Of a DNA stretch of 64,000 bases, positions 18,889 to 54,766 are shown piece after piece. The translations under genes were made by a program, and so were the position numbers. Source of the DNA: Podarcis erhardii. Taxonomy: Eukaryota. Each line of letters opens with the position of its first letter. The stretch's first letter is position 1. The stretch is from assembly GCA_964252035.1 (NCBI GenBank), contig OZ176207.1. One strand, written 5' to 3'. A model generated the notes under the pieces. That model had not been told where the DNA came from and did no database searches. It saw only the letters and a program-made list of their open reading frames with translations.

Positions 18889-19632
18889 CATCTATCCCTT
18901 TATTATGCCAACCAAGATGTCACAAAGATAGTGTACAAGAGCTTAGACTAAAATTGTCTGGAGCAATACAGCACATACAGAATGTTTAGCTACATAGCAA
19001 GTCTCATGGTCTCACTAATTTATTTGATTTGCTGGTTTTACTAATTTTTTGTAATATTTTGCGCTGTATGTATGTATTGTAATTATACAAAATATAGCTT
19101 GAGGACTGAGAAGAAAGTAAATTTGACAGAACATCCCTTCCTTGATGCTGACATTAGAGAAATATTTGAAAGTAAGTATCATGCTAAATTGCATATTTTT
19201 CTTTCTCCGCTGTGAGCTTTCTAGTGTCATCCTATGATTTTCATCACAGAGACTGTTTCCTGAAGTCTTATATATTGTATCCATTTACAGTATAACACAG
19301 AGCAATTCATGCCTGTCAAATACATATATTCTGGTGCTAATCATTCCATATTGGTTTTGCCTTTAAGCAGCTGTTTTGCCTACTTGGGTCTGTAAACTGT
19401 TCCTTGTTCTTATCACTCAGTTCTCAGCATCCCCAAATGCTTGTGACACTTGGACAACCTGTGTTCAACCAGAAATAATGTGAACCAATATGGTCCTACT
19501 GTCCTCATGCCACTTTTTTTTTTAGCTTAGACCTTTCTCAGGATGTGTTACAGTGTTACAATCAAGTGGAATTATTATTTACCTCTTATTCATGGTTTTG
19601 GAATTTCGTGTTAGCATCTGTCCATTTCTCAG

Positions 19633-20770
19633 TCTCTTATACAAAGCAGATTTCAGACCTAGAAAAAAAGGACAATATTCTGGAGGAGGAACCCGTTTTG
19701 GAAGAAACAGTGTTGGTGTTGTAAACTAAAGATGATGGCTCAATTGCAGCTGTTACCGTCTGAAGAAAATTATGGGAATGGGAAGTCTCCAAAGCTTCCA
19801 GGTGAAGGTCAATAGGCAAGGGTGGGAAATATACAATAGGCCAAAGCAAGGCCTACTTTCGATGTAGCTGTGCAAACTCAGACTGAGGAAAAGAAGATGC
19901 CATCTGTAATGGTTAATGTCAACAAAAACAACAGGGGAAAAGAGATAAAGCACAGTATGTGACGGTGACTGTTCAGCAGCAATGGGATGGAAGAGGAGAG
20001 GTTCCCTAGATGACCATACAGGTACAACAAGGACAAAATATGCTATCAGTAACAGCCAAGGTGCAACAAGAGTGGAACAAAATTGGAGAGGTATCATGTG
20101 TGTCTGTAAAATTGCAACAGCAGATTGCAGGAAGAGAGATGCCCCACCCATGTGTACATGGGAATGGTCATGAAGGAGAAATTCCTTGTGAGGATGCCCA
20201 TTGGCAACACAATAACAGGTACAAGGATGCACCTCATGAAAAACAAGACCAGCAGCAAACCCAGTGCAAGAATGGGATAATAATGGAAGAGGAGCAGGAG
20301 CAACAAGATCGGGAAGAGACAAATCTGTTGGATTCAAAGTCCCTATGGAAGAACATGAATCAATCACTGGGGAATGAGAGCTTGCAACAGCAACGTAAGT
20401 GGGACCAAAGCAGCACAGAGCAGCTAAGGGCCGAAGACCTGCTACAAAGAGAGCAAAAAGAAAGATTAGAGGTGATGGTGATGGAGAAGAAATTGCATGA
20501 TGACAGCCAAAATGCAGAACTAACAAATATGCTAAAACTTCAATCTTGTAGTATGAGAGAGGAAGACACACAAGACCCAACCACAGAGAAGCGGCAGGAA
20601 CATGAAAATGAAGATGACATTTCCTCTCATCAGCAGCAACATGGTTCAGATGAAGGAACCCAAAAGATGAAGGTAGAAGAGAAGGAACAGGAAGACAAAG
20701 AAAAAAATGTATCTAAGAAACACAGAAGGGATATGCCTATTTTGTTGCAATCCCAATAGCAAATGATCAG
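19633..20770 (+). pseudogene. AKAP7-like large Glu/Gln-rich exon ending in the YFVAIPIANDQ strand
   Basis: Acceptor tttctcAG at 19631-19632 and donor CAG|GTAAGG at 20771. Contains the 249-aa ORF 20010-20759, in-frame stops at 19722 and 20007, and a frameshift at 20736-20738. Exon start is less certain than its end. Confidence 0.75.
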
Positions 20771-23099
20771 GTAAGGCAAATTTGGCTTAATAATTGGAAT
20801 GCTGTGATGTGGATTAAAAATCATTAAGCTGTTCCTAATTAGTACTTAATTAGCTGTAACTATGGGCTCGTCCACACTTCCTTTTATGCCACATTTCTGG
20901 GCACAGGTCCAAGTAGCGGTTGTTGTTGTTTTTCATCCAGTGCTTTCCCTGGGAAACCCATGTTTTGCTGCTGAATCAGAGCAAGCAGCAATTGCAGACA
21001 AATAAAAAATAAATAAAAATGCTCGTACACAGATCTGGAAAACCCAAATGTCAGGGGGCTGCATCAGCTGCATGACTGAGTTCACTGTAGTGAATTCAGT
21101 CATGCAGCCAATACCTGTGGGATGCAGCTTTGCCAGCCCTAGACTCAGGATAAGCCCTGAGCGCAGGGCTGGCAGAGCTCCTTGCAATGCTGTCAGGTGA
21201 TGTCAGCCTATCAAAGTTGGCACACACAGAAGCGTAGGAAAGGATGTGTGGTGTGTGTGGTGTGTGTGGTCCACCCTGGGTACCATGACTGAGGGGGGGT
21301 GACAAAATGGCAGGTGAATGGGCAGCACACCTGGCACCTGGTGGCAGCAGCTCTTCTGACCCGGCAGCAGAGAGCAGCCCACCTCAGCCGTGACAAAGCA
21401 CACCTGGCCGCAGCAGCTCCATTGCTGGGTCATCAGTGAGCAGCAGCTTCCCCACCCCTCTCCTACCCTGAACTGTGGCACATGGGAGGGCACCCTCTGC
21501 CCCCCGCCCCCCTCGGGAGTGCTCCCATGCCCCCCCCTCAGGAGTGTGTCTGCCCTGGGCAGCACAGGCATATGCTTCTCCTCTGGGCACACAGGGATGG
21601 AAACAGATGAGGACATGGCTTGCCAAACCAATAAGGTTTCCCACCACTGGAGTAATCAATCAATTTAAGCAGGGCTGGGAAGCCTCAGGCCTAGGTTGGT
21701 CTGTATGTGCCCCCCCCCCAGGCTTCTTTCTCTGACTGTTGGGATGTTCCTCCTGCCACATGGGCCTTGCTTCACATACTCCTTGAGTGTTTTTGTCTGA
21801 ACTCTGATAATGCCTCTTGCTTGCCTGAATTATGGCTAGAGTAAGATGTGAGTGTGTGTAGACACTAGACTACTGTGCAAGTGTGAAATTCACATTTACT
21901 CCACTCACATTGACCTCTGGCCCTGTTGACTACAGATGTATGGCCCCCAGAAAAGGATGCATCCCTCAGGCTGAAAAAGGGTTTCCCACTCCAGAATTCA
22001 AGCCTGCAGCACTAATAATAATAAAAGGTTATGGAATATAAGGACACATGCCCTTGAACAGCATGTCTATATGCTTAACTTTTTTTTGTTGAAGAATAGA
22101 AAATATTATGGTCTGGTTTTGGTGCCCCAGAAACATAAGTGCATTTTTAAGTGAACAAAACTGAACCATACCAACTAGAATTGTAACTTCTTTTCAGTGC
22201 ATGTTTAAGCTTCTGGCCATTGGGACTTCCCTCTCCTGGTTAAATTCATTCATCTTAATCCTAAAAATGCTATTGAAGGTTCTTTCAAAAACCATAGTAT
22301 TTTTTCCTGCAGCTTTTCAGCTACGCAGATGAAACAGACTTGGAAAATGCTGAGAACAGGCCGTGCAGCTCAGCAAAAACAATGTCTTTAAAAGTGGCAA
22401 ATTTAGTCATCTGAACGGATTTATTTGCCATCACAGTTTCCCACTTGGGAAAAGGCATCAGTTTCTTCATGTAATCAGGAAGTAGCACACAATTAATTAT
22501 GGAAATGCTATTCCATTTTCCAGTCTGTTAACAATTGGCAGCTGCATAAGACCACACCAATACTTAGTTCTCTTAGTTTTGTGCCCTCAGTGAAGCTGAG
22601 GTTCAGAAATAGCACAATCAGTTTCTGCTTCCTCATAATATACTCTATATATTTAAAATTTAAGGAAAGATCATATTGAAATTCTGGGCTTCAGGCAAAG
22701 GTGAAGATGCATTCTGCATTCTCTCAAGTAGATACAACTCAAGTGGAAGTCTGAAGTTGCACATAAGAATTATGTATCAATAATGTGTTTCTTAGGGATG
22801 GTAAATCCGGGATCCCTCCCCTCCCAAAGAACTTTATTTTTTAGAGCCTAAAAAAGTTCCTTATCTCAGTCTGTTTTCATGAAGCCCAAAATGAGTTCAG
22901 TTTGATGTTAAAAATTGCTTTTGGTTTAAGAGAGATAACTTCAAATCACTGCCTAGCACCTGGAGAATGACTGAACACATCTTGAACAGGGACACTTCCC
23001 AAGTGTCTTAAGAAGCTAAATAAATTATCTCTGGGTCTAGGGTTAAAACGTTAACAAAGTGGGTGCATTATTTTTGATAAACCTCCTTTTTATCATTAG

Positions 23100-23235
23100 A
23101 TTTTAGATAAAATTGAAGATGTCGAAGAGCTGATATTCACCAAAGAGCCTGACCTCTTGAGAGCCCCAATTCCAGATCAAACGGTGCATTTATGATTACT
23201 GTAGCTCATCTGAGGACAGAATATGATGTGAGAAG
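23100..23235 (+). pseudogene. AKAP7-like exon carrying the first HxT motif (frameshifted)
   Basis: Acceptor tttttatcattAG and donor AG|GTAAGG. The exon is 136 nt; CAT TTA TG ATT at 23187-23197 shows a 1-nt loss that creates TGA at 23193. Confidence 0.85.
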
Positions 23236-23640
23236 GTAAGGGAACTTAAAACAGGGAGAGGAAATAACTTTAAATGTCGTTTTGCAATTAAATGAATGAA
23301 TGGTTTTTATTCTTAACACATTTTGTGTTGGATACCATGGTCAACGTGGGATCAAATGCCACTGTGAGGGTTGTGCTACCCCTGTCCATTTTCCAGCTTG
23401 GGTCCGCCAAGGTAGTAAGTTTATTCCCTGTGAGCAATATCCAGCTAACTAGGTTCATCTGTGTAAGATTTTCTGCTTGCACAGTGGAACCCTCCCTCTC
23501 CTCTCCTCTCCCTGTGCACACACCTCCCCTTCCCCAAATCTACTACAGAATAGATTTAGGGGGTGCCTGGGGAGAAGGAAAGGAAGAGAATTTCTGCTGT
23601 ATGAGTGGAAATCCTTCCACTGACTGAATGTGAACTGGTT

Positions 23641-23775
23641 ATGGAATCATAGAATTGTAGAATTGGAAGGACCCCAAGGGTCTTCTATTCCAACCCCCTG
23701 CAATGCAGGAATCTTTTGCCCAATGTGGGTCTCAAACCCATAACCCTGAGATTGAGTCTTGTGCCCTACCGACTG
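23641..23775 (-). mobile_element. Short tRNA-derived SINE with CR1-type tail
   Basis: Minus strand reads CAGTCGGTAGGGCACAAGACTC-AATCTCAGGGTTATGGGTTTGAGACCC (tRNA-like), then CCTTCCAATTCTACAATTCTATGATTC (CR1 tail). Confidence 0.7.
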
Positions 23776-24035
23776 GCGTTGGTGAAATAATCTTTATTGT
23801 GAGTTACTAGAAGACTATTATAAAATTGAAAGCATAACATTCCAAGTATTCAGGACATGATAACTAGTGGTCTGATCCTGTTTTGAATAATAAACCTGGC
23901 AGTACAGAGGCAACGTGAGGCAAGGCTCCAATGGTTACCTTAGACAGCTCTGTGCAAGGCACAGGCAGTGGAAGCTCCACGTGAGCTGAGCTCAGTCGCT
24001 GCTTCCGCAGCTCAGTTCATCCTCAAGATGAGTGT

Positions 24036-24756
24036 TGTAGCAGGACCCCCCCCCCAATCACTCAGTTTGTACAAACTTCACACACACTCACACTCACACA
24101 CTACATACACTACACTTCTGTTATAAATTCATAGAAAATCAACCATACATCGGATTTGCACTGTTCCACTTTTATTTTACTCCATGAAGGAAAGACTACA
24201 AAATGGGGAAGGTTTGATACAGGGCACCATAATCCCTTCATCATCCCAGCACATCCACAGGAGCCCTGCCCAGTTGCTATGCCAACCCTGGTGGTCCTAG
24301 ACAGAAGACAATCAAGATCACAAAGAACTTGCATATGGGAGTGGATTCAGCATGGACTGGAACAAAGGACAATGATCAGATCTTCCCTCAGGGGGCAGGA
24401 AACTGTGACTACCTTTTGTCTTCAGAAAATGACTCATGGGGAGGAGGAGAAGGGAACCAGCCAGGTGACAGGACACTCAGGTTACCACCACAACTCCTCC
24501 CTCAACCCCTCCTTTCTGTAATGTATGCATGATGTTTCTGGGGGTGGGTTTGACCTAGAGGATGGGAATTTCAAAAGTTTTTATAAGGTCTTGCACACCA
24601 TTTTTCTGTGTCTTTTCTCTCACCTGCAAGTGAGGGGAGCACCCTGTTGCAACAGTCAATAAAGGCCAAGCCTGTAGGCTGCTGATTTGCTCCAATTTAC
24701 TCTGGTTGGTGTCTTTACTTTTTGTCCAAGGGAGCCCTCGGAATTTTCCGGTAACA
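24036..24756 (+). mobile_element. ERV-like solo LTR, 721 bp, in an intron of the AKAP7-like gene
   Basis: TGTAG...TAACA ends; 4-bp TSD GTGT (24032-24035, 24757-24760); TATAA at 24582 and AATAAA at 24658. Confidence 0.75.
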
Positions 24757-25175
24757 GTGTTAAATAGGAGACTGTGGCTCCACTAGGGCTTCTGGGCTGA
24801 AGTGCTGTGAGGTGGAGGAAGGCAACCCAATGTCCTTGGTTCAGAGAGGTCCTGGTATAGCAGACTACTATCACACAAGTGTTTCTGATAGTTTATGCCT
24901 GAGGGCAATCCTACCCATTGGAAATAATCAATATGTCTGTTTCTGTAAATATATATATTATAAAAAATAAACTTGTGCTGCTACATGAATAACACGTCAT
25001 AAAATTAAATGGAGCTCTACAAGGTACCTTCAGAAATCTCTTAGGGTTTTATGTTGCAGAAGCTATTTTAAACAATGTCTTATTTAATATTTATGTTTAT
25101 CTTTTATATCTCAGGATTTATTTTTAGGAGTATGATTAAAGTAACTGGTTGAGCTTCAGGTTTAGAATGTATGCA

Positions 25176-25366
25176 CAGTGGTACCTCGGGTTAAGAACGT
25201 AATTTGTTCTGGAGGTCCGTTTTTAACCTGAAACTGTTCTTAACCTGAGGTACCACTTTAGCTAATGGGGCCTCCCGCTGCCTGAAGCAAAATTCTTAAC
25301 CCGAGGTACTATTTCTGGGTTAGCGGAGTCTGTAACCTGAAGCATCTGTAACCTGAGGTGCCACTT
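25176..25366. mobile_element. Tc1/mariner (Tigger-like) MITE
   Basis: TIR CAGTGGTACCTCGGGTTA with a degenerate right end; same family as 37275-37500 and 47651-47889. Confidence 0.8.
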
Positions 25367-26621
25367 TATGTTTTTGGGGTTTTAGCCTGACAGGAAATGA
25401 ATGACTAAAAACCGAAACCTATTGTGGCGCTTGCAGTATAACAGATAATGATCAATTAAATTTAATTGAATAATGGATTTGTTCTGGGGTAATAGTAAAT
25501 AAACAGTGTGTAATACAATGATGTGGTACAATTACAGTTTAATATTATACAGGAAGAAGTCCAATTTATTTTTCTAAGGCTTTTAAAGGGCCTGCTACCT
25601 TCAACACAAGCAGAGCTTTCAACACAGCAAACATTTTACTTGCCTCTTCAGTGCTTGATGCTTGGTAGCTTATCAGACCTAAGCATACTTACTTGAAAGT
25701 AAGCAAACTCGAGGACGCTTACTACAATGCCAGCATGGAAGACAACAGAGGACAGTGCAATCTGTGGATGAACCTCCAATATCTGAGGCAGGCAACTCAT
25801 AGGCCACCAAACCCAGAGGAGCTTCCCCACCTTCCTTTTGCTGCTCAGCTGCTCAGCCATAAGTTGGAAAGGAGGGCAGTATTTCATGTGCAGTTGGAGG
25901 GGGTTTTAACCTCATCCCTGCAGTGCTCCCAATCCTGTAAAGATTGATGTCCTTGTACTGCTTAGAAAACCCCCAGGAGAACAATCTCCTGCATTTTGAT
26001 GAGCAGATGGACACACAGGGATGGTCTCCATTCAAGGGAAGGGAGAAAATTTTAATGGGGAGAGGGGGAGAGAGAGCGATGCGAGGGAAGAGTTTTCCCT
26101 GCATATTTATCTCCTCATTAAAAATGTGTCACTAGCCCACCAAACAGCTGTTGGTCAGGCAGGCTCTCTCAGTTTTAATGTGGCTGACTCTGGCCACATA
26201 CTGGCTTGTGGTCTGATCCAGGCTGCTGAGGAGTTCCCCCCACATGTTGCTGCACTGGAAGAAAGAGGTGAATTATGTCAATTTCCCCTTCCGGCACCAT
26301 GCCTTCTGAAAAACTGCTCCACAATGTTATGGGATCCTCTGTAGCGGTGAAGGTTACTGAGTATGTGTGCAGAGGAAATTGGTGAGAATTGCTTCCCACC
26401 TTCCTTCAGTGGGAATCTCTGCTGGATCCTATTGTGGTCAGGGAAAAGCTTATCTAGATCCATCCCATTTTGTTCTTTTATGCTGACCTTGTGCTTTTGC
26501 AGTGAATATTTTGCATCTATGCAAGCAGACGTTCCAAAAAGCCATCTTGACCTTAGTATTTATTCCCAAAGCTGCTTGGCTGGTGATTTCCTACTTAGGA
26601 GTGTGTTTCTTTCATTTAAAG

Positions 26622-26779
26622 AGCTGTTTCTGCTCTGGAGCACAGCAAGGCCAAAGTGCAAGCTTTGTTGCAGGGAAAACACTTCAGCGTGGCATTTCAT
26701 GGGATTGGCCAGTTTAACAACCAAGTGATCTATATTAAAATGTCAGAGGATGAACAGCAAATGCTAAGCAGAATTGTGG
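26622..26779 (+). pseudogene. AKAP7-like exon (AVSALEHSKAKVQALLQGKHFSVAFHGIGQFNNQVIYIKMSEDEQQMLSRIV), still open
   Basis: Acceptor ttctttcatttaaAG and donor G|GTTAGT; 158 nt. Matches AKAP7 [26 protein letters not shown]. Confidence 0.88.
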
Positions 26780-27054
26780 GTTAGTATTTAAGCATTCACA
26801 ATTTGCATGAGAGAGATTACTATTTCAGTGAAACACTGAAATAGCATATCAACATTGAATACAATTATGGATGTTGATTACTTGAGTGTAAAAAGTAGAT
26901 TTCTCCTGCTTCGTTAAATTTCTGTTAACATATATTAAAATAGATCCTGCTTTTCTTGGGCATCGAAGTCTCTCCACTGTTGCCATTGTGTTTCAAATTC
27001 CCTCAGAACACTGTAAGCAAGTGTAAACTGATACACAAAACTTCACATATCTGC

Positions 27055-27600
27055 TAAAGGGGTGCGTAACTGACCAGGAATAGACCTTGGGGTTCTAGTG
27101 GACAACTCAGTGAAGATGTCAAGCCAGTGCGTGGCAGCCACTAAAAAAGGTGAATTCCATGATCATTAGGAAAGGGATTGAAATGCTGATCCATTAAATC
27201 TACTGCAATGCACTGCACTGCATGTGGGACTTCCCTTGAGCTTAACTTGAAGCTGCAGGTGGTGCAGAATGCTGCATCTAGGTTGGTGATTCCTCAGCAG
27301 TGGTGTTTTATGCTGTCCGTGGGACACCCCATGGACACCACAGAACACCTCTGCTGGAGAAACTGCACCAGCTGCCAATATGCTACCAAGTGCAGTTCAA
27401 GCTCTTGCTTTTAGCAGTAAAGCCCTAAACAACTTGGGACCAGGATACTGTCTTGCCCAGTATACCCCTGCCTGGCAATTGTACTTCTCATTTGGGGTAC
27501 TACTAGGAGTACCAGATACCCCCAGAGGTGCACTTAACCTATACTAAAAACCAGGCTTTTGGTGTTGCCATTCCAGCTCTCTGGAATGGATGACCAGCTG
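27055..27600 (+). mobile_element. Adjacent CR1 RT fragment (about 27055-27185) and L2 3' fragment (about 27200-27600)
   Basis: GACCTTGGGGTTCTAGTGGAC...CCAGTGCGTGGCAGC is the CR1 DLGVLVD..QCAAA motif; LKLQVVQNAASRL is an L2 RT motif. Confidence 0.6.
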
Positions 27601-27901
27601 AAGGTAACAGTTCTTGACTTGTATTCTGTACAGCCTGTAGATATGGCTGATCTTACGGTGCTGTTCAGGTATTATTCATACTAGCTCTTCACATTTTGCC
27701 TCAATAATTGCTTTAAAATAAAGGTTCCCATGTTTGCCAAGTAAGATTGCCATGGTATGTAAATAGATGAAGAAACTGTACACCATTGGAGCATATGGTG
27801 TGTTTAGTCTGCCTCCCTGTTTTGCTTAGAACTGCTGTGGAGTGCCTGTATCTGAATGTCCTGTAAACAAATGTCTTTTATTTTCATCACTTGTCTCCTA
27901 G

Positions 27902-28014
27902 AAGCTGTGGCGAACTCATTCACCAGAATGAATGTAGGCATCAGAGGCAGCAAAGATTTCAGACCCCACCTGACGATTCTGAAACTGTCCAAATCACACA
28001 CATTGAGACGCATG
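27902..28014 (+). pseudogene. AKAP7-like exon carrying the second HxT motif (PHLT, 27964-27975); donor mutated
   Basis: Acceptor ttgtctcctAG; 113 nt. The expected donor position 28015 reads ATAATT instead of GTAATT. Confidence 0.85.
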
Positions 28015-28179
28015 ATAATTAAGCAGATGGAATTATCTCCTTTTTGTGCTTTGTTTCTTTGCTCCTTTAGAACATTGAAAAATGTTATAGATCACCATGT
28101 TGCATGCAAAACAATGATATATCAAATTGTTAGGAGATTTTATCTTATTCTGGGCATCGTGAACTTCTCTCACATGACT

Positions 28180-28750
28180 TGACTTGACCTCCACCCACAA
28201 AACAGCATCGCTCCAGTCAAAGGTAAACAGAAAATTAAGACCCAGAAGCCTGGGAGAACAAAAATGTTTTTGCCTGGAGCCTAAAAGCAGATAGTGATGG
28301 TGCCAGATGTTCCTCCCTGGGGAGAGCATTCCATAAATGGGGAGCCCCTCTGGGGAGGCCTGTTCTCCTGTTGCCACCCTCCACCCTCCCCTTGGAGGAG
28401 GCCTGGAGGTCCTCATATGATGAAGGAAGGGTCTGGGTTGGTTCATGTGTGGCGGGGTATTCTTTGAGGTACTGGGGTCCAAGCTGTACAAGGCTTTATA
28501 GGTCAGAGCCAACACTTTGAATTGGGGCCAGGAGCTAATTGGAGCCAATGCAGTCATGCAAGAATTAGTGTGATTATTCAGACCATCTTGCCCTGGTCAG
28601 CAACTTGGCTGCTGAATTCTGCACCAGCTGCAGATTCTGAGGCACTCCTCAAAAGCAGTCCCACATATAACACATTGCAGTAATCTGACCTAGAGGTTAC
28701 CAGAGCCTAGATAACAGAAGTTAGACTATCCCTGTCCAGGTAGAGGCCTT
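28180..28750 (-). mobile_element. L2 LINE 3' fragment
   Basis: Minus-strand peptide QFKVLALTYKALYSLDP matches the L2 ORF2 C-terminus. Confidence 0.7.
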
Positions 28751-28829
28751 GAAAGACCTAAAGTGGCTCCCAGTATGTTTCTGAGCACAATTCAAAGTGT
28801 TGGTGCTGACCTGGAAAGCCCTAAATAGC

Positions 28830-29165
28830 CTCAGCCCAGTATACCTGAAGGAGCGTCTCCACCCCCATTGTTCAACTCAGACACTGAGTCCAGTGCCGAG
28901 GGCCTTTTGGTGGTTCCCTCACTGCAAGCAGTGAAGTTACAGGGAACCAGGCAGAGGGCCTTTTTGGTAGTGGCACCCGCCCTGTGGAACACCCTCCCAC
29001 CAGATGTTAAAGAAATAGACAACTATCTGATGTTTAGAAGACATCTGAAGGCAGCCCTGTTTAGGGATGTTTTTAATGACTGATGTTTTAATGTATTTTT
29101 AATCTTATGTTGGAAGCCGCCCAGAGTGGCTGGGGTATAAAATTATTAATTAATTAATTAATTAC
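28830..29165 (+). mobile_element. L2 LINE 3' end
   Basis: RAFLVVAPALWNTLPPDVKE..FRRHLKAALF peptide, AAGCCGCCCAGAG 3' motif and a (TTAA)n tail. Confidence 0.75.
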
Positions 29166-30932
29166 TGGGTGACCAGCCAAAACTGATGGAAGGCACTTCA
29201 TGCCCCTGAAGCCACTTGAGCCTCAAGCAACAATAATGGATCCAAAAGTACATCTAAGCTACACACCTGCACCTTCAGAGGAAGTGTAGCCCCATCTAGG
29301 GCATCTGCTACCTCAGCAAACATCATGCTACTCTGCCTGCTAGATAACCAACACCTCCACACATCCTCTCTTGGCTGATTTAATTTAACACTAGCAGAGG
29401 TATCTCTTGAGCTACAATGATCCCGGATGTTGCACTTCTAACATATATAACACCAACTGAGCATGCCATTTTAAAAATCAATATTTTTGACTTGCACGAA
29501 AGCACTTCTTCATGTAATTGCTACTACATCAATGTCTGCATTTAAAAGTAAAAATAAACAAAAGGTGTGTTAACCCTTTTTTTATATATAAAATTTGAAC
29601 ATCCATGTTGCTAATGTGGCACTAACTAAAAAGTAATAGCCACAGTGTGTGGAAGTTTGTAAGCCGCTTTGAGATTCATTTGAATGAAAAGTGGTATAGA
29701 CATACAATAAATCTAAATCAAACCAAGGTGAAGAGTTAGGCTGCTCGGAATGTCACTGCCATGTCAAAACCATGCCTCTTTGAAAAAAGATAGAAGAAGT
29801 GGTGCTGAGACAATTTATGCCTACTGACACTGCAGAACAACAATTTGATGCAGACAGAATCATGTAGAGTGAACACAGAATCACAAATGCAGAGAGTAAA
29901 CTCCTAGCATGGAAGTACCCCAGCAGGATATGACTCTTCCATGTCCCCACCTGCTTCTCAGGCAAAGTGGAGTGAGAGTGAGAAATAGGGTATTATCTCT
30001 AGTCAAGAAAAGAACTTTATATAGGCCATAGGGTAACCATTTCATGTATGTATAAACTGCAGCCTGCAAACTATTTACTCCATAGTAAATCAGTAGGATT
30101 ACTTGAGAATAAAGTGATTTGAGATTCAAAACTGCAGTTTTGCCTTTACTGCCTTTGCTTATATCAGTGGCATGGAAATGCAGCCCTGAGCTGTTTCCAC
30201 CAAAGGAGCAAAAGAGGTTCTGGGGAATGTTCAGCTGACTGCAGGATTTATGTCAGGTAGCATTCAAGGCTTCTGGGACTTTGCAGTATAAATACATGAT
30301 ATGCTGATCTAACCTTTAACTGCAGCAGGATATAGGATTTGGTTGGGTTTTATTGCTTTACAATTAAAGTAAAAATGTGGCTCTGATTAGATTAAGTTTT
30401 CCCTGCTCAAATGCTGTCTTCCTTGTTTCCTGGAATAGCTGTGTGTTTTTATGAGGTCAATATAATAAGCAGAAGGAAACAATAATGATACACTCTCAGG
30501 ACGTGAAGCGAATGCTTTAATAGTGGAAGAAAGCGTTCCCTGACCATGAGCTTCTGCCTGGCAGGTATGAAGTATTTCTTCAGATATTTGATGTCTCTCA
30601 TTCAGCTTGGAAATAGCAGAGCTTATTTATAAAGATATTTACTCTAAGGCTGAGGGTGACAATATTTCTGTTGTCTAGGGAGAAATGCAGGAGGATAGGA
30701 ATGAGTGATGTTGAGCTAATGGTGTATTTTGTTTTGTTTTGTCTTGTAAATCTCCATTAAGTAGATAATGTTGGGCACACAGCTGAAATGCACTCAGTAG
30801 CAAGGCTGATGGGAAGATAATAAATGCAAACGATACAAAGTGTTCCTCCATTGGAAGAATGACTCTGCAAAAATGTGTTTCTGAACAAAACACTCTCCTG
30901 TAAAAGGTAGACCTTATTTCTAGGACCTTTAA

Positions 30933-31287
30933 AGGTAAAGGTAAAGGGACCCCTGACCATTAGGTCCAGTCGTGACCGACTCTGGGGTTGCGGCGCTCAT
31001 CTCGCTTTATTGGCCGAGGGAGCTGGCGTACAGCTTCTGGGTCATGTAGCCAGCATGACTAAGCCGCTTCTGGTGAACCAGAGCAGCACACGGAAACACC
31101 ATTTACCTTCCCGCTGGAGCGGTACCTATTTATCTAGTTGCACTTTGATGTGCTTTCGAACTGCTAGGTTGGCAGGAGCTGAGACCAAGCAACGGGAGCT
31201 CACCCCATCGCGGGGATTCGAACCACTTACCTTCTGATCGGCAAGTTCTAGGCTCTGTGGTTTAACCCACAGCGTCACCTGCGTCCC
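30933..31287 (-). mobile_element. Sauria SINE, full length
   Basis: Reverse complement of the 3750-4101 family; 14-bp TSD TCTAGGAC(C/T)TTTAA at 30919-30932 and 31292-31305. Confidence 0.92.
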
Positions 31288-32739
31288 ATTCTCTAGGACT
31301 TTTAATGATGCCTTATTCTTTTTCCAACTTGTTCCCTCAATGTTGTGATCAAGCAGAGGCTGGGCCAAATGTTAATCCACTGCCCTGACAGCCTCTCAAA
31401 CCTCATCCACTCTGTATCTCAGGGTGGGCCATGCCTGGCTTCCGTCCTCCCCCTTTGATGAAGATAATTTCCTCGGATTCCCCTCCTAGTGTTGATATAG
31501 TAGCACTGGGGGCTATTGCAGCACCCCCGCATCAAATCAGTAGCATAAGCCATTTGCTTGCACTTTGCTGGGATCCATCCCTCATTCCTATACTTTGCCT
31601 CAGTCTATGTGTTTGAGCTCTTAGCTCCATTTCTCTGGGATACAACAAAAATGTCACAGTCTTTGTCTTAGGGTTGCACACAGACACCCTATACAAATGG
31701 GCCTGTCTCCATCTCAGCCACATGGGGGGGGGGGAGATGCAGTTAGCATGAACCTTGCTACAGAAGTGGTTATGGGGGCAGTGCAAGCAAGTCATTCCTC
31801 CTGTGCAGGTTTCCCAGTCTAAATCCTCTTCCCCAAAGCTGCTATTTGCCCAGGAGGGAGAAAACACGGTTGCAAACAACAGCTTTGGAGCTTGAGCTAT
31901 TTAAATAAACCATGTGGGAAGAAATAGCTGGACCCTCTTTCCTACGCCACTTCCTCAATCAAATGAGAAGCTCAGAGTGTTTTGTGCTTTGAAAAAAGGG
32001 ACATAAATATGTCATTCTAAGTGCTGAGCAACCTCATCACATAAATCTCAGCCCTCTATGGAATTGGAATTGTTCAAATTCTGATTCAGGACTCTCTTAT
32101 CTAATATAATGAAACACATGTCTTTGTTTGTCTGCCCTTGATTCCCTTATCCTGCCTTTATTCAGGAGGAGTCCTGCTGAGCTTAATAGACACAACATTA
32201 AGAAGTGATAATGGCCACCTTAGATATTGTAATTTTTGATGTGAAAAAATGAGTTAGAACCATGTGTCGATTTTTGCACTTCTTTCTGCTACATACAAAA
32301 ATGTTGGGAAGTGCATTTGTCCACAGTCCTTGCACAGGTGTATTGCATGTTTACTCGGGGAAAAAAAGGAAATCCTAATGATCTGTGTTTTTCCTATACA
32401 TTTTCTTACATAGAAATGCGCACTCTCTCTCTCTTTTTAAAAATAGTTGCAAGTTTTGGAGCTACATTCAGGGTTGGTGCTATCATTAGACCGACGAGGA
32501 AGCCGTCTAGGGTGCAGACTTCAAAGGGGTGCAATACTGACCTTTGAGGGGCACAATTTTATATGGATTAGTTCTGGTTATATAGTTTTGTGCTTTTGAA
32601 AATAGAAGCCAACAATTTGGGGCCTGCATGCAAGACGTTAGCCTGGCCTAGGTTGCAAAATAGCCACACCAGCACTGGCCACATTGTCAAAGCAACTTTG
32701 TTATATCAGTTGAAGTACTACTTAACCTACATTCTTAAG

Positions 32740-32915
32740 CAGTGCTTTCCCCCCCAAAAAAATTGTTTAGGGGTACTCTCATTTTGACTCAAGAAAATCA
32801 CCATTTTATAGTGCAAATCACGAAAATTAAATACAGTAAATGGACAAAAGTACAAAGATTCACAAAATGTTTAGGGGTATGCATACGCCTGCGTCCCCCC
32901 AGAAAAAAAGCACTG
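32740..32915. mobile_element. hAT-type MITE, family copy 2
   Basis: CAGTGCTTT...AAAAAAAGCACTG; TSD TTCTTAAG / TCCTTAGG; same body as 18711-18888 in the opposite orientation. Confidence 0.85.
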
Positions 32916-33249
32916 TCCTTAGGAGACCTATGCTCACCAGGGTTGAGAGACACTTTCTTCCTGTAGACTTTTTGCAGCACAATATTGATTCAGTTCATGT
33001 TCGACCAAAATGTTTGAAGTTAGGTGGTAGATGTGCTAGAGGATGTGTGGATCAGTTTGGCCAGATATGCTGTGGTGCTGCATCAAGCATCATTTTGAAG
33101 TAAATTCCCTGTTTTGATGGATGAAAAATGCACAGGAAAGGGGTACTAGAATGAAATATTTTGGTTCCTTTGCAAAGAAGCTGAATATGAGATAATAAAA
33201 GGGATATGCAGATGACTCTACAGACACAGCATTGTAGTAGCTATTCTGA

Positions 33250-33263
33250 TGCCATCTGCTGGC
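33250..33263 (-). promoter_or_regulatory. CTCF-like motif (GCCAGCAGATGGCA)
   Basis: Matches the CTCF core CCASYAGRKGGC; motif match only. Confidence 0.35.
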
Positions 33264-34013
33264 TGTACTTTCCCACCAGGTTGTACATTACATTTTCCCT
33301 GGTTATTTCTGAGCCTCACTTAAGTACTTGTTTAAATTCAGCAATTATACAGAAATGGTTGGATGTCTAGGGGTGATATCTGTGTTGTGGCATGATTAAC
33401 AAAATCAGTCCTCCTGGCAAACTGGGAATATCACCTCATTCAGCCAAGTTTAGGATATTCCACCATTCTTCAGCAGAGTTTCTTTTTCTTTGAGAAAAGC
33501 AAGTGGTTCACATAAACATAAACAAGTTTTAATAATAAACTGAGAGAAAACTGTAGCAAAATAACATGATGTCTGAGAGAAACTAAAACAGTACCCTGAG
33601 ACAAGTCTGAGGCAAGAAACAAGAAGAGGCAGTTGGTCCCTCTTAACTGACAGTTTTAACTGAACACACACTGAAGGGAGGGGCTGATTCTGGAGCAAAA
33701 TACACAAGCCCCGCCCACCAAATATCAAGCACTCTACTATTCAAATTAGACCCCAGTGTTTTTCTTACAATCTAATGGTATCATGATATCTGAACCTAAT
33801 GTCAGTTTAGTTGCACAATATTTTCCCTTCTTCCCCGCATCCCTGCGTAACCCCCCACCCCCCCAAAATCTGTTCCTGGTGGGTTCAAAGGACAACCCCT
33901 AGGAGCAGACTTGAGGAGCACATGAGAGTCTGCGGGGCGAGGGGGGAGGAAGAGGAAGATGTCCCATCACATCTGCTGGACATAGCTCTAGGATCTTCTC
34001 CCTTTGAAAAAGA

Positions 34014-34057
<44 letters not shown>
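34014..34057. repeat. (AAT)14 microsatellite
   Basis: Direct read. Confidence 0.95.
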
Positions 34058-34059
<2 letters not shown>

Positions 34060-34529
34060 TTATACACCACCCATCTGGCTGGTATTCCGTGGTAAGAGTA
34101 ATCAAGAAGTATAACAGTTAAAGGACTAAATTGTCATTGAAAAAAGATTAAGGACTCATTTGGCATCTAAAAAAAAGATTAGCATTTGATCCCCTCTAAA
34201 TTATGCACTTCTGCAAGCATTAACTGTGAGCTCTGTAAAAATGTGATCATGTAATTAAAGATTATAGAAGGCAGGCCAAGTGTGATATCAACGCCTTATT
34301 TAGACCCAATGAGCAATTGTGCACTAGAGGCTTGGCTGAATCTTTTTAGCATATGTACCAATTATGCTTAATAATTTGCCATTTTCTGTCTCTCTCACAC
34401 CCCTTTTAGCAATGTACACACTAAATAAATGGAATAAGCTGCATCAGGTAGACTTATCTAACAAAGTGATAGGGTTGCTGCTTATTCCAAATATGGGTTT
34501 TTAGTGCTACATGAAAACTGCTGAAATTA

Positions 34530-35516
34530 GAAGGAGGAGGAGGTGGAGGAGTTTGGATTTGATATCCTGCTTTATTTTATTTTATTTTTTTTTATAAAGT
34601 TTTTATTGGTTTTACAGAATACAGAAATACAAAGAGAAACAAACAAAGACAGAAAAAGAAAAAAGTAGATGTTTCAAATTTCCATATTCCCTTTATCTGG
34701 ACTTCCCCACATCTTCCAGACTCTGCATTATTTATAGTACAAACTTCAGCAATTTATTATCTTGTTTCATGACTTATTGTATCTTTCAATTTATCATGTT
34801 TCCAGATTCAAAATATTGTATTCCAATTCTTATATATCCTATTTAAAACACAATAAAACTTATTTCATTGTTCCACCTTTAGCTTTTTGTACCTTAGTTT
34901 TCATTTCATCTAATTACAATTGCTGGGGCTGGTGTTTCCTAAAAAATGCATTTTCTTAACATTCATACAACTTACAATGTTTTTGCAAATAGTCCTTGAA
35001 TTTTTTCCAGTCCTCTTTTATTACTTCTTCTCCCAAATCTCGGATTCTGCCAGTCATTTCAGCCAGTTCCATATAGTCCATCAACTGCGTCTGCCATTCC
35101 TCCAGTGTGGGTAAATCTTGTGTCTTCCAATACTTCGCAATGAGAATTCTTGCTGCTGTAGTAGCATACATAAAAAAAGTTCTGTCCTTCTTTAACACAC
35201 TCTGGTCTACAATGCCCAGAAGGAAGGCCTCCGGTTTCTTAGGTAAGGTATATCTGAATACCTTTTTTAACTCATTATCCTGCTTTATCACTACCCAAAG
35301 GAGTCTCAAAGCGGCTAACATTCTCCTTTCCCTTCCTCCCCCACAACAAACACTCTATGAGGTGAGTGGGGCTGAGAGACTTCAAAGAAGTGTGACTAGC
35401 CCAGACTTCAGAGAAGTGTGATTAGCCCAGCAGCTGCATGTAGAAGAGTGGAGACACGAATCCTGTTCACCAGATTACGAGTCTACCGCTCTTAACCACT
35501 ACACCACACTGGCTCT
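34530..35516 (-). mobile_element. tRNA-head SINE with CORE-like body and L2-like tail (Squam3-like), split by an L1 insertion
   Basis: Head AGAGCCAGTGTGGTGTAGTGGTTAAGAGC, tail AGCCGCTTTGAGACTCC...(CCT)n; the two halves rejoin across the L1 TSD. Confidence 0.75.
34576..35275 (-). mobile_element. 5'-truncated L1 (ORF2 C-terminus, 3' UTR, A-rich tail)
   Basis: Peptide ELKKVFRYTLPKKPEAFLLG...WKKFKDYLQKHCKLYEC is nearly identical to the 42170 ORF; 13-bp TSD TATCCTGCTTTAT (34563-34575, 35276-35288). Confidence 0.92.
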
Positions 35517-35882
35517 AATTAATTAGAATGATAGTCCATGTTGTCTGATAACCTGTTCCCATGGGGCATTTCTGACCAGAGTAGGGATCCCAATACTGTA
35601 TCTATATTTAGGAAGTGGACCGTACAAGGAGAAACTGAAGCAGCTCTCACTATGTCACAAAATACCCATGTCATCGTCCATCTTAAAATCTTGGATTTTG
35701 CCATTGATTTCTATGGGCAGTGTGAGCTTTCTCTCTTTCTCATATCCCTGGTGAAAATTTAAAAAATAGCTGTGACAGTATGAACCAGGAAGTGACCTTT
35801 CGAGACACAAGATGGTTCTTTCTACCCTTTATATATGCCTGTGTTTTTCTTTGTTTCAGCCACTCCATTCTATTCTTCCTCC

Positions 35883-36053
35883 CAGTGCTTTTTTTCCCCT
35901 TAAAAAAAAAGTTTAGGGGTACTCTCATTTTGACTCAAGAAAACCATTTTATAGTTCAAATCAGGAAAAATAAATACAGTAAATGGACAAAAGTACAAAG
36001 TTTCACAAAATGCTTAGGGGTACCCCTGTGTCCCCCCAGGAAAAAAAGCACTG
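35883..36053. mobile_element. hAT-type MITE, family copy 3
   Basis: Same TIRs and body as copies 1 and 2; TSD degenerate. Confidence 0.8.
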
Positions 36054-37202
36054 CTCCCACTCATCCAGTTTTCAGCCCCCCTCCCCTTTTCTGTCACTCA
36101 ACATTCATTGCCATGAGGTTATTATGGGGCTGAATCTTGTTTGTATTACATTTTATTACTTGTAAAACTTTTTACAGATGTGCCTGCCCCTTTCTCTCTC
36201 CAAATTCTATATCTCCCTGTACAGCTGTAGTAGCAGTTGAAATATTTTCATGGGAAGTTTGTTGCAGGGACATGTATTTATGCTACAGTGAAGGAATCCA
36301 TAACCCTTAAGCCCTATTGGAATTGGTTGGTATTCAGTGTGTGTCATCTCATCCTTGTTGCAGGATGGGTTGGAAGCTTTTGCAAATTCAAAGTACAATT
36401 ACCATACTCATATCATATGAAGTTCTCTAGACCTTGTTGTATTTGAGCCCATAATTAAAGAACTTGACTAGAGAACAGAAGCGTGAGAGGTGAGAAGTTA
36501 TTATGCTTTTACAATTAGAAAATGACAAAGATCACTGAACAGGAAGTCTAGACTGCAGTGACTCAATGAGAGTGTTTTTTGCATTAATATGTGGCAGAAG
36601 AGGATATTTATTAAGAGGTGTTTTACTTTGACATTTCATTTTGCACATTGTGGCTGCTGTAATATCCATCTTCCAAATTTATTCTTGGTGTTAATCAGTC
36701 ATCCAAAAGACGTAATTCTCTCTCCCCCCCCCCCACTCCAAAGAATGAGACACCTTCTACAGTACACTCCTGAGTCGTTGGTTCACTTTAATATATGTTC
36801 TTCCTGAATAAAGAGGACCATTGCGTAGTGCAAACAGCAAGATAGGATAGTGTTATTTAATGTGGAAGAATGCAGTTGTGAAACAAATGAAACTGAACAA
36901 TTGGGGGAGTGGGGGGAGCTCTGAGGGGAAAAGATCCTGCTGAAAGTGATCCAAGAATATTGTTGAAAAGTTTTGCAACATAGTTAAACAAAATTGCTAA
37001 AAAGTTTATAGAGGTAGAATAATGCATTGAGGGTTTTGCACCTGAGAAAGATAAAATAAGTTGTGGATTTTCCTTGGATGACAGTTATGTACGTACCTGT
37101 TGATTTTTCAATCTCAAATCTAGTTTGTTGATTTTAGGAAAGTCATAAGGTGTTGGGGTTCTACCAAGCTGTAGCTAGTAAAACTAGGGTCCAAACAATG
37201 GC

Positions 37203-37206
<4 letters not shown>

Positions 37207-37238
<32 letters not shown>
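37207..37238. repeat. (TG)16 microsatellite
   Basis: Direct read. Confidence 0.95.
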
Positions 37239-37241
<3 letters not shown>

Positions 37242-37274
37242 TCTTACTCAAAGGCATTGCATACAAAAGCAGTA

Positions 37275-37500
37275 CAGTGGTACCTCGGGTTACATACGCT
37301 TCAGGTTACAGACTCTGCTAACCCAGAAATAGTGCTTCAGGTTAAGAACTTTGCTTCAGGATGAGAACAGAAATTGTGCTCCGGTGGCACGGCAGCAGCA
37401 AGAGGCCCCATTAGCTAAAGTGGTGCTTTAGGTTAAGAACAGTTTCAGGTTAAGAACAGACCTCCGGAATGAATTAAGTACTTAACCCGAGGTACCACTG
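37275..37500. mobile_element. Tc1/mariner (Tigger-like) MITE, 226 bp
   Basis: Perfect 18-bp TIRs CAGTGGTACCTCGGGTTA / TAACCCGAGGTACCACTG with a TA TSD on both sides. Confidence 0.92.
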
Positions 37501-37795
37501 TATAAATGTTATCAAATCATCCTTTTCATGCCCACAGTATCAAATGTCTGGACAGAAAAAGCAAGTCATTCCTGGAAAGTGAAATGACACAACACACAAA
37601 GTAAAAAATATTGATAGCAAAAATATTGAGATTCTGTTAGCTACTTATTTGCACTATAAGAATGATCAAACACCACATTTAAAGCATTGTAGTCTTTGGG
37701 CAGCTGATTAAAAAAAACCAAAATCTGTTTCTTAAAAAAAAAAAAGGTTTCAAAAACACAGTGTGTAATACACAATGTATTTTCCAATGTTTTAG

Positions 37796-38257
37796 GGCTT
37801 TACAAAAATTCAGGAAGATCTCTATAGAAAGTATGAAGACAGTCCTTTTGGCACAGAGATCTTAAGGCAAATTGATCTCTGCGCTATGCATGAAAAGAAG
37901 CAGATTTCTGGTTATTACCACTGTGCATCTTCCATCAGTGCATGCCCAACAATTCCAGAAGACCATAAGAACAAAGAGCAGCCGGGTGATGCTCCAAAAC
38001 AGAATATTCTTGGTGTCCATTTAAAAGGCAGCATGTGTGACAATACAAGAAAAAAGCCCAGAGACGATTATCTTGCTGTTCAGAGGGATTACAAAGTAGC
38101 AGGAAATCTTGATGGAGATGCATCCACAAGGGAAGAAAATGGTATGACTAAAATAGACACCGAAACGAGAGCCAAGCATCAAACTTTCTCTGCAGACAGA
38201 GAGCTCTGTTCCAAGTCAGTACCTGAATTATTGCCAGTATTAAAGGCTAAGGATTAG
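37796..38257 (+). pseudogene. AKAP7-like terminal exon (end of the 2H domain plus unrelated C-terminal tail)
   Basis: Acceptor ttttccaatgttttAG, phase 0. Encodes GFTKIQEDLYRKYEDSPFGTEILRQIDLCAMHEKKQISGYYHCASS, then an open tail to TAG at 38255. Confidence 0.85.
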
Positions 38258-38976: not shown

Positions 38977-39845
38977 TGCTTTCTTACCTCTCTCGCCCTG
39001 ACCTAGCCACTGTGATCCACGCGACGGTCACCTCCAGACTGGATTATTGTAACTCGCTCTACATGGGGCTGCCCTTGAGACTGACCCAGAAACTCCAGCG
39101 GGTGCAGAATGCTGCAGCGAGACTCCTTACGGGGTCCTCACTGGGAGAACACATTCATCAGGTGCAGTGGCGTAGCGTGGGGGGTGTAGGGGGGGCTGGC
39201 TGCACTGGGCGCAACATCTGGGGTTAGGGCAAATCCATGGGTTAGGGGGCGCAAATCCACGGGTTAGGGGGCGCAAATTACTTGCCTTGCCCCGGGTGCT
39301 GACAACCCACGCTACGCCACTGATCAGGTGCTATACCAGCTGCACTGGCTCCCGGTTGAATACAGGATCAGATTTAAGGTGCTGGTTTTAACCTTTAAAG
39401 CCCTATACGGCCTACGATCCTCTTACCTACGGGACTGCCTCTCCTGGTATGTCCCACAGAGGAATTTATGATCTGCAAACAAAAACATCTTTGAGGTCCC
39501 AGGCCACAGAGAGGTTAGGCTGGCCTCAACCAGAGCCAGGACTTTTTCGGCTGTGGCTCCGATCTGGTGGAACGCTCTGCCACAAGAGATTAGGGCCCTG
39601 TGGGACTTGACATCTTTCCACAGGGCCTGTAAGACAGAGCTGTTCCGCCAAGCCTTTGGCCAGGGCACAGCCTGACTCCCTCCTTTGGCAATCTTCACAG
39701 AACTCTACCCAATGGTTGCCATCAATTTGATTTGAAGTAATGATTTTAAAATGTTGTCTTGTTTTATTGTTGTTAGCTGCCCTGAGCCCGGCTTCGGCTG
39801 GGGAGGGTGGGTTATAAATAAAAATTTATTATTGTTGTTGTTGTT
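38977..39845 (+). mobile_element. L2 LINE 3' fragment interrupted by a MITE
   Basis: Peptide DLATVIHATVTSRLDYCNSLYMGLPLRLTQKLQRVQNAAARLLTG matches the L2 RT C-terminus; ends in a TTA/TTG tail. Confidence 0.88.
39165..39322. mobile_element. hAT-type MITE, 158 bp
   Basis: 16-bp TIRs CAGTGGCGTAGCGTGG / CCACGCTACGCCACTG; perfect 8-bp TSD ATCAGGTG. Confidence 0.92.
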
Positions 39846-43817: not shown

Positions 43818-44669
43818 GAGATATGGGAACCCTTTTTAAAGCATGCGCTACCCCTGCTGGATCAGGCCAAATAACTGTGAGCTGTGATGTCACAATCTGC
43901 TTAATGTGGAGAAGGTAGACTTATGAAAGGTCCCAAAATGCAGTTCTAGGATCGGGGGGTGGGGACAGACATTTTTTTTTTTTAATTTTGAAACTTCATA
44001 TCAGACATACTTTGTTAAGTGGGTCACCTTTAGCAAAAGAGCTCAATTCCACTGCAGCTGGCTGTTGTAAATCTGTTTGGTTCGTGTGTTAGGAATCCCC
44101 ATTCTGGATTCGGTCCAGATTGTGCTGTGTGTGAGTGACTCTTTTCAGGAACTATGAGGAGGAGGAAAACACATTTGCTTTTGTATTGTTACTTTGCATG
44201 TTACTTTTGTATGCTACTTTGTATTGCATTTTAACTAGCGTTGAAAGGCAATACAAAGTAATTTTCCCAGAGAAAGTGTTTCCCCAGAAAAACAGAACAA
44301 CCATTGAGAAGCAAAATCTTTAATGACTCTTCAGCTGTTTAATTACACCTCTTATTATGAATGTGACTCGATGATGTGACCTATTAACAAGCATTTTCCC
44401 AAGCAGCCATTATTTTATTAAAGCTCATTAATTAACTTTCTATAGACAGATGGCAGTGGAGCATAGCAAATACATTCTAAACATGCACCCGTTTACAATC
44501 TTTAAGAGGATTTTCTCATGTGAAATTTGCACAATGTGTTAATTTTAAGGTCCCTATATATTTGCTATGCCTTTTTTGTTGTGTGAAACAGAAAACTTAC
44601 ATTTCACCATTCAACTTGCAGTTTGCACGGTAAAAACTCACTGTGTTAATAATAATAATAATTTATTGT

Positions 44670-53068: not shown

Positions 53069-54766
<1,698 letters not shown>

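Follow-up and report, generated by a model that had tools for sequence, protein, structure and literature searches.

The window analyzed here, a stretch of 64,000 nucleotides (nt) from Podarcis erhardii (GenBank assembly GCA_964252035.1, contig OZ176207.1), holds the remains of a multiexon gene, and the question that this locus raises is whether a gene has died here in place and, if so, which gene and when. A sequence-only reading had described 19633-28020 as a unitary pseudogene with several independent lesions, including the loss of a catalytic HxT motif. We find that positions 19099-38257 on the plus strand very probably represent the syntenic orthologue of an unnamed vertebrate AKAP7-like gene that is dead in this lacertid, that is, a unitary pseudogene. 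In its intact form, the gene would encode a protein with an N-terminal region rich in Gln and Glu, followed by a short basic stretch and a stand-alone 2H (two HxT) domain. Three nonsense codons, three frameshifts, and a GT-to-AT change in the exon 5 donor would have ended production of the two-motif protein, with the gene being inactivated in place inside the Lacertidae and then drifting neutrally in the lineages of the window and of Podarcis lilfordi. The earlier designation agrees with the seven lesions, the retained introns and synteny, and the intact orthologues found elsewhere, with the absence of a second copy judged indirectly.

Identity of the gene

Exons 4 and 6 each pass singly the cut-off (24.4 bits) of the Pfam family AKAP7_NLS (PF10469; NLS, nuclear localization signal), scoring 26.9 and 33.9 bits, respectively. 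Both also match the PDB entries 5JJ2 (AKAP7gamma) and 2VFK (AKAP18delta), with E values of 4e-07 to 1e-06 for the exon 4 stretch 26623-26778 and of about 2e-12 for the exon 6 stretch 37796-37945. The window exons were searched individually, and codon counts were taken per exon and then summed. A phmmer search with the terminal exon returned a P. lilfordi "hypothetical protein" of 123 amino acids (96% identity), together with full-length proteins of 500 to 930 amino acids that align through a lineage-specific tail. These full-length matches, most of which go by "uncharacterized protein LOC..." or "AKAP7-like," are those of Hemicordylus, Rhineura, Sceloporus, Crocodylus, Lagopus, echidna, bilby, wallaby, and a caecilian.

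The Rhineura protein (P0064, 576 amino acids), used as a word-search query, gave 90 family members, with PF10469 present in 90/90 and PF10470, the helix that binds the type II regulatory subunit (RII) of protein kinase A (PKA), in 0/90. The members derive from an agamid, skink, cordylid, python, rattlesnake, gecko, and monitor, from turtles, crocodilians, and many birds, and further from monotremes, marsupials, frogs, a salamander, caecilians, and sharks. Intact orthologues are annotated in Rhineura, Pogona, Lerista, snakes, geckos, turtles, crocodilians, birds, monotremes, marsupials, amphibians, and sharks. Gar also belongs to the family, whose range thus spans sharks, gar, amphibians, sauropsids, monotremes, and marsupials. 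The orthologues in Rhineura (LOC133370213), Hemicordylus (LOC128323107), Pogona (LOC110079420), and Crocodylus (LOC109313944) have the same five-exon core, the same tail, and a convergent TMEM200C as neighbor, and their identity to the window is 61 to 83% per exon.

In a quick maximum-likelihood tree of 27 intact proteins, from which the broken window sequence was left out, the TMEM200C-linked AKAP7-like clade is separated from AKAP7 proper (dog, bat, possum, gecko, bichir, and lamprey) with 99% support in the Shimodaira-Hasegawa-like approximate likelihood ratio test (SH-aLRT). The window exons are 65 to 83% identical to Rhineura, and their alignments to human and rat AKAP7 are visibly weaker. 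The Rhineura domain aligns end to end with human AKAP7gamma 5JJ2 (198 residues, E 1e-52), with the HxT motifs in register (MHLT with FHIT, PHLT with PHLT) and the C-terminal GYYHC likewise. The terminal exon of the window leads straight to a stop codon without an RII-binding helix, and a fuzzy six-frame search of the window for that helix (PF10470) found none, a negative that is only a lead. Judged from these comparisons, the window gene is the orthologue of an AKAP7-like paralogue, a predicted stand-alone 2H phosphoesterase without a PKA anchor, and not AKAP7 itself.

Working members of the family have two H-x-T/S motifs in one frame. In the window the second (PHLT) is intact and the first reads H-L-TGA, and because of this the locus is a relic of a PF10469 family member and not a working one.

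Human TMEM200C lies beside EPB41L3 at 18p11 and AKAP7 near TMEM200A and EPB41L2 at 6q23; on these positions, the two AKAP7-type genes would be ohnologues. In the literature searched, we found no description of a vertebrate AKAP7-like paralogue, only invertebrate genes and a hypothetical ancestor of viral phosphodiesterases. The term "AKAP7-like" has been used for proteins with the AKAP7 NLS Pfam domain only, which are reported from invertebrates, Ciona, and algae as AKAP7 precursors (PMC3508976), and an "AKAP7-like ancestor" has been proposed for viral phosphodiesterases (PMC10835031). The present family shares the definition of the former study (a 2H domain without an RI/RII-binding domain), in which a vertebrate paralogue beside AKAP7 is not described.

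Gene structure and disabling lesions

Lesions were called from tblastn searches with three orthologues and from nucleotide alignments to the Rhineura, Pogona, and Lerista exons (Table 1). The orthologues are annotated as intact, whereas in the window seven disabling lesions follow the conserved ATG at 19735, namely, three TAG codons, three frameshifts, and one dead donor, and translation from this ATG ends after 26 codons. The stops or frame changes that the sequence-only reading had placed within 19750-19930 correspond to TAG 19813, TAG 19837, and the 1-nt loss at 19919/19920, and the TAG that it reported at 20007 is present, in the ancestral frame, where Rhineura encodes Glu. Its proposed 4-nt loss from MPNYF at 20736-20738 is borne out by the alignment, with the window reading GATATGCC followed directly by TATTTT and Rhineura, Pogona, and Lerista reading GCCTAACTATTT or equivalents. 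At 23193, where a 1-nt loss had been said to turn H-L-T into H-L-stop, the window has CAT TTA TGA TT and the orthologues CAT CTT ACT ATT (H-L-T-I), which amounts to a net 1-nt loss plus substitutions, with the Thr of the first HxT motif replaced by TGA. Similarly, the AT noted at 28015 stands against GT in all three orthologues, and the exons at 26622 and 37796, described as open and well conserved, are open and 83 and 65% identical to Rhineura, respectively.

One lesion claim changes in kind. The TAA at 19722, reported as an in-frame stop, is present, but it arose through frameshifts that precede it, within an optional 5' extension, and not through a nonsense substitution. It lies one base off the ancestral frame, which reads Cys-Cys-Lys-Leu-Lys, and its triplet straddles Cys-Lys; the frame changes of the 5' extension put it in the exon 1 frame. 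As it falls outside the ancestral frame, we do not accept it as a nonsense substitution. The Rhineura counterpart of this exon 2 extension (DFRPRKRRKIFWRRNQFWEKKG; L002:9885-10000) is itself closed by an in-frame TGA just before the annotated ATG, and because of this TGA the long N-terminal isoform of Hemicordylus and Crocodylus seems to have been lost, or to be untranslated, in the amphisbaenian too. For the same reason we did not count the frame changes of the 5' extension as coding lesions, the coding status of this extension in the lacertoid ancestor being uncertain.

No reading of the locus can yield a protein with both catalytic motifs. A cryptic donor GT at about 28046, read by eye, was considered and rejected: it would add 31 nt to exon 5 and break the frame into exon 6. 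Also rejected as a further lesion were the TAG at 38255 and the G-run behind it, given that Lerista ends at the same KAKD.

The locus comprises six exons with introns of 0.5 to 9.8 kb, in a window of vertebrate DNA with zero N. All acceptors and 4/5 donors are consensus, the exception being that of exon 5. From exon 2 come the Gln/Glu-rich N-terminal region and the opening 11 residues (YFVAIPIANDQ) of the 2H domain, now read across three frames; in the intact gene, a short basic stretch (KKHRRD) stands before the domain, where AKAP7 has its NLS. The N-terminal region at 19850-20160 is made up of degenerate units roughly 16 residues in length, following the pattern V-T-V-Q-V-Q-Q...G-E-V-P, which are conserved at the protein level from crocodile and grouse to lizards (orthologues P0064, P0006, and P0016). 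Tandem Repeats Finder reported no DNA-level repeat in exon 2, and the VTVQVQQ-like periodicity exists at the protein level only.

TABLE 1 Exons, lesions, and synteny anchor of the AKAP7-like locus in the window (a slash in a sequence marks the exon-intron border)
Feature	Position	Strand	Evidence or remark
Upstream coding exon of long 5' isoform (LRTEKKVNLTEHPFLDADIREIFE)	19099..19171	+	tblastn, Crocodylus P0006 residues 34-57; donor consensus A/GTAAGT
Exon 2, large	19633..20770	+	tblastn of Rhineura P0064 and Hemicordylus P0002; nucleotide alignment
Two frame changes, optional 5' extension	19641..19669	+	+2 nt at 19641-2, -1 nt in A-run 19663-9
Conserved internal ATG	19735..19737	+	Homologous to annotated start of Rhineura protein
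Nonsense TAG	19813..19815	+	Orthologue CAA, Gln
Nonsense TAG	19837..19839	+	Orthologue CAG, Gln
1-nt deletion, frameshift	19919..19920	+	Rhineura CACATGCAA vs window AATGT-CAA
Nonsense TAG in ancestral frame	20007..20009	+	Rhineura GAG, Glu
4-nt deletion, frameshift just before 2H domain	20736..20738	+	GCCTAACTATTT to GCCTATTT; MPNYF to MP.YF
Exon 3, first HxT motif	23100..23235	+	H-L kept, TGA at 23193; downstream ITVAHLRTEYDVR in -1 frame
Exon 4, open	26622..26779	+	83% identical to Rhineura (tblastn); AKAP7_NLS Pfam match
Exon 5, open, second HxT motif intact (PHLTILKLSK)	27902..28014	+	
Destroyed splice donor, AT for GT	28015..28016	+	ATG/ATAATT vs AAG/GTAATT or AAG/GTGATT in three orthologues
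Terminal exon	37796..38257	+	Last 50 residues of 2H domain and 103-residue tail; open to TAG 38255; 65% identical to Rhineura
TMEM200C, intact single-exon coding sequence, 563 codons, DUF2371	53072..54760	-	Conserved convergent neighbor, synteny anchor

Synteny and family-level absence

The AKAP7-like locus and TMEM200C are convergent (tail to tail) in the window, 14.8 kb apart, and Rhineura has the same arrangement, with LOC133370213 and TMEM200C converging across 22 kb. There, zero genes are called in the 10 kb next to either gene on the sides that face each other, with about 2.2 kb between the fetched loci unseen. Both genes lie on one contig in Hemicordylus, Varanus, Sceloporus, Lagopus, and Colinus (with adjacent locus tags in Colinus), and in P. 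lilfordi their accessions are consecutive (CAI5779714 and CAI5779715). Because introns, exon phases, and the TMEM200C neighbor are all kept, the locus is, by its structure and position, an orthologue decayed in place and not a processed or duplicated copy.

With respect to other lacertids, the two protein libraries contain no lacertid protein of the AKAP7-like clade, save the 123-amino-acid terminal-exon open reading frame (ORF) of P. lilfordi. TMEM200C proteins of Lacerta agilis, Zootoca vivipara, Podarcis muralis, Podarcis raffonei, and P. lilfordi are present in the same collection, and since lacertid TMEM200C proteins are catalogued and AKAP7-like ones are not, loss at the family level is supported. 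The TMEM200C loci of L. agilis and Z. vivipara, taken with 10-kb flanks, extend to the equivalent of about 41.05 kb in the window, some 2 to 3 kb short of the terminal exon. Placental mammals likewise provided no member among the phmmer and word-search matches, in which no rigorous search was aimed at Eutheria; this suggests a second, independent loss in that group.

The TMEM200C protein of the window differs from that of P. lilfordi at 7 positions, from P. muralis at 8 to 9, from P. raffonei at 12, from Zootoca at 17, and from L. agilis at 24 (96% identical). Five differences against the window are common to the three Podarcis species, and the window species therefore lies either just outside the group of these three or deep within it.

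Lesions in reads and in a second assembly

We compared window positions 18900-24899, a stretch that ends before the donor at 28015, with Logan contigs of four runs. Run X1, which carries the same species label and contains 0.92 of the words, yielded one contig spanning 18976-21299, gap-free and with 20395 G>A as its one substitution, and a second covering 21834-23661 with zero substitutions and one missing letter. As this missing letter is a further loss, it cannot restore the 1-nt loss at 23193. All six lesions from 19813 to 23193 lie on stretches reproduced by these contigs. At 20395 the window has G, the X1 contig and organism I have A, and organism B has G, and the site is either heterozygous or an error of the assembly consensus.

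Run X18, from organism I, whose word share puts it at about 3% divergence, shows deletions only, with zero inserted letters across 20028-20984 and 22184-23652, and neither the 20736 nor the 23193 frameshift is repaired there by an insertion. It lacks 19980-20027, a block of 48 nt that includes TAG 20007 and equals exactly one of the units of about 16 residues. Run X4, from organism B at about 1.2% divergence, covers the whole stretch, and the stop codons are untouched by the 26 listed of its 29 substitutions. The P. lilfordi assembly (L001, fetched via the 123-amino-acid ORF and corresponding to window 26146-51146) has the identical ATG/ATAATT donor. Assembly error is excluded for practical purposes, because the X1 contigs, X18, and the P. 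lilfordi assembly agree with the lesions; the four substitutions among these, the X1 contigs, and the P. lilfordi donor equally uphold the earlier view that long-read indel error is unlikely to explain them all.

Selection and age of the loss

Between the window and P. lilfordi, exons 4 to 6 show 9 nonsynonymous changes (575 sites) and 2 synonymous ones (151 sites), which corresponds to a ratio of nonsynonymous to synonymous rates (dN/dS, omega) of 1.18, based on small numbers. At an omega of 0.2, the probability of at least 9 nonsynonymous changes out of 11 would be about 0.01 (our binomial estimate). Exon divergence between the two (1.5%) is close to that of the neighboring intergenic DNA (1.7%), and change in both lineages since their split looks neutral. 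On the lacertid branch since the Rhineura split, omega for the 2H domain is 0.35 to 0.44 (17 synonymous and 29 nonsynonymous changes, parsimony), compared with 0.17 to 0.23 between intact species, these comparisons being three-taxon estimates. The branch comparison and the neutral change since the P. lilfordi split are what the dN/dS check suggested with the sequence-only reading returned, and they fit its proposal of a "fairly recent, lineage-specific" death.

The loss is older than the split between the window species and P. lilfordi, because P. lilfordi shares the donor lesion and organism I has zero inserted letters at both frameshifts. Since omega over the whole lacertid branch is only 0.35 to 0.44 and yet the exons have been neutral since the P. 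lilfordi split, death would have come late on that branch, and we infer that inactivation took place inside the Lacertidae, after their split from the amphisbaenians. Treating the branch as a mixture gives a neutral fraction of about 20 to 30%, equivalent to some 0.05 substitutions per site, though the interval is very wide. A lesion clock, in which seven lesions in about 1.74 kb are set against about 0.2 disabling events per neutral substitution (our own estimate, from an indel/substitution ratio of 0.12 to 0.23), gives about 0.02 (Poisson range, 0.008 to 0.04). The neutral depth per lineage is 0.008 to P. lilfordi and 0.025 to 0.028 to Lacerta and Zootoca. These figures would place the death of the gene at a neutral depth of about 0.02 to 0.05 substitutions per site, near or somewhat after the divergence of Podarcis, Lacerta, and Zootoca.

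Alternative explanations

Several observations weigh against a unitary pseudogene that died within the Lacertidae. The lacertid and Rhineura branches do not differ significantly in omega (bootstrap intervals of 0.25 to 0.84 and 0.08 to 0.77, respectively). The X4 contigs hold 5 and 4 gap letters at unlisted places, by which the indels at 20736 and 23193 are not directly readable in them, and for organism B the sharing of the frameshifts is deduced from organism I, which is more distant and brackets it. Unitary status in the strict sense, with zero second copies in the genome, was tested indirectly, via the protein libraries. Finally, a 249-codon ORF (20010-20759) survives in exon 2, and the sole putative RNA run, X19 (organism F), falls on the intronic repeats at 23646-24899 only and is uninformative on expression.

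The last of these points bear on the rival that survives best, in which the locus would be functional in a reduced form, as a Gln/Glu-rich protein without a 2H domain (from ATG 20010, 249 codons), as a terminal-exon product, or as a regulatory or noncoding transcript. The open frame at 20010-20759, the annotation of the terminal-exon ORF as a 123-amino-acid protein in P. lilfordi, and the consensus splice sites outside the exon 5 donor would all suit such a remnant. However, the open frame is explained by composition, because the exon is T-poor (209 T in 1,138 nt) and the opposite strand holds an even longer ORF of 275 codons. A word search with the 249-amino-acid product gave zero hits, under a length limit that shuts out orthologues of roughly 570 amino acids. 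The terminal-exon ORF comprises only the last third of the fold and contains zero HxT motifs, and its changes against P. lilfordi are 5 nonsynonymous and 2 synonymous, whereas X19, limited to intronic repeats, gave no support for expression. We therefore regard a reduced function as very unlikely.

Less likely still is that the locus is a decayed duplicate with an intact AKAP7-like copy elsewhere in the lacertid genome. The search in this genome covered the window, which leaves room for such a copy, but the dead one occupies the ancestral position, convergent with TMEM200C as in Rhineura and with all introns kept, and four RefSeq-annotated lacertids plus P. lilfordi have TMEM200C proteins and zero AKAP7-like proteins of this clade. 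The weakest rival, an intact gene obscured by long-read indel errors, can draw on two frame changes that coincide with or adjoin short homopolymers (CC at 20736; the A7 run, 19663-9) and on a sample that X1 may share with the assembly, but it is barely credible given that four lesions are substitutions (three TAG and the donor), that the loss of 4 nt at 20736 is no homopolymer slip, that the X1 contigs reproduce the lesion stretches yet differ from the window at 20395 and hence are no copy of it, that the dead donor recurs in P. lilfordi, whose genome was assembled separately, and that organism I is without inserted letters at either frameshift.

Relation to known systems and significance

The intact orthologues of the unitary pseudogene belong to the same fold family as the long isoforms of AKAP7/AKAP18 (gamma and delta; 2VFK, 5JJ2, and PF10469) and have the same exon-encoded motifs. 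Unlike AKAP7, they form a separate ancient clade without the RII-binding domain, with a long Gln/Glu-rich, repeat-like N terminus and TMEM200C as neighbor, and the window copy, again unlike AKAP7, is dead. The classical unitary pseudogene is GULO in primates, a single-copy gene lost in place. The present case resembles losses of the GULO type in that the gene has decayed where it stood, with introns and synteny retained, and in its several independent lesions, its relaxed omega, and the intact orthologues of sister lineages; in contrast to them, no phenotype can be attributed to the loss.

The domain of mouse AKAP7 has 2',5'-phosphodiesterase activity on 2',5'-oligoadenylate (2-5A; PMC4161237), and the AKAP7 central domain binds adenosine monophosphate (AMP). 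By analogy, the intact enzyme probably works like that central domain, through nucleotide binding and 2',5'-phosphodiesterase activity, in the nucleus or cytoplasm. The same 2H domain has been repeatedly captured by RNA viruses to blunt OAS-RNase L (PMC10835031). One could go further and suppose that the TMEM200C-linked gene is a second vertebrate 2',5'-phosphodiesterase that restrains OAS-RNase L or another RNA pathway based on 2',5'- or cyclic phosphates, with its losses in the Lacertidae and apparently in placentals being convergent rewiring; we consider this speculative extension unlikely, and if it were true, the lizard pseudogene would be a natural knockout for that RNA pathway.

Taken alone, the locus is a well-documented and unsurprising lineage-specific gene loss. 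It also points to an unstudied, widely conserved AKAP7 paralogue that has the 2H domain and no kinase anchor, and that at least one family of reptiles, and possibly the placental mammals, appear able to do without. Lacertids could serve as a natural null for enzyme assays in birds, reptiles, and marsupials, and annotators have a firm reason not to force a coding model onto this locus.

Other features of the window

High-copy repeats occupy intronic positions 21300-21900 and 23500-24900, with a word depth of up to about 7e5 in the DNA runs, and are the sole parts covered by X19. Four stretches of the window are absent from the P. lilfordi assembly (28888-29298, 34575-36084, 38985-39830, and 41766-43818) and are probably recent insertions in the window or deletions in P. 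lilfordi. A 376-codon ORF at 42170-43300 on the minus strand has zero Pfam matches. The same is true of the long ORFs on both strands of a G+C-rich block (0.55) at 60160-61370, which is probably a CpG island or a 5' exon region upstream of TMEM200C.

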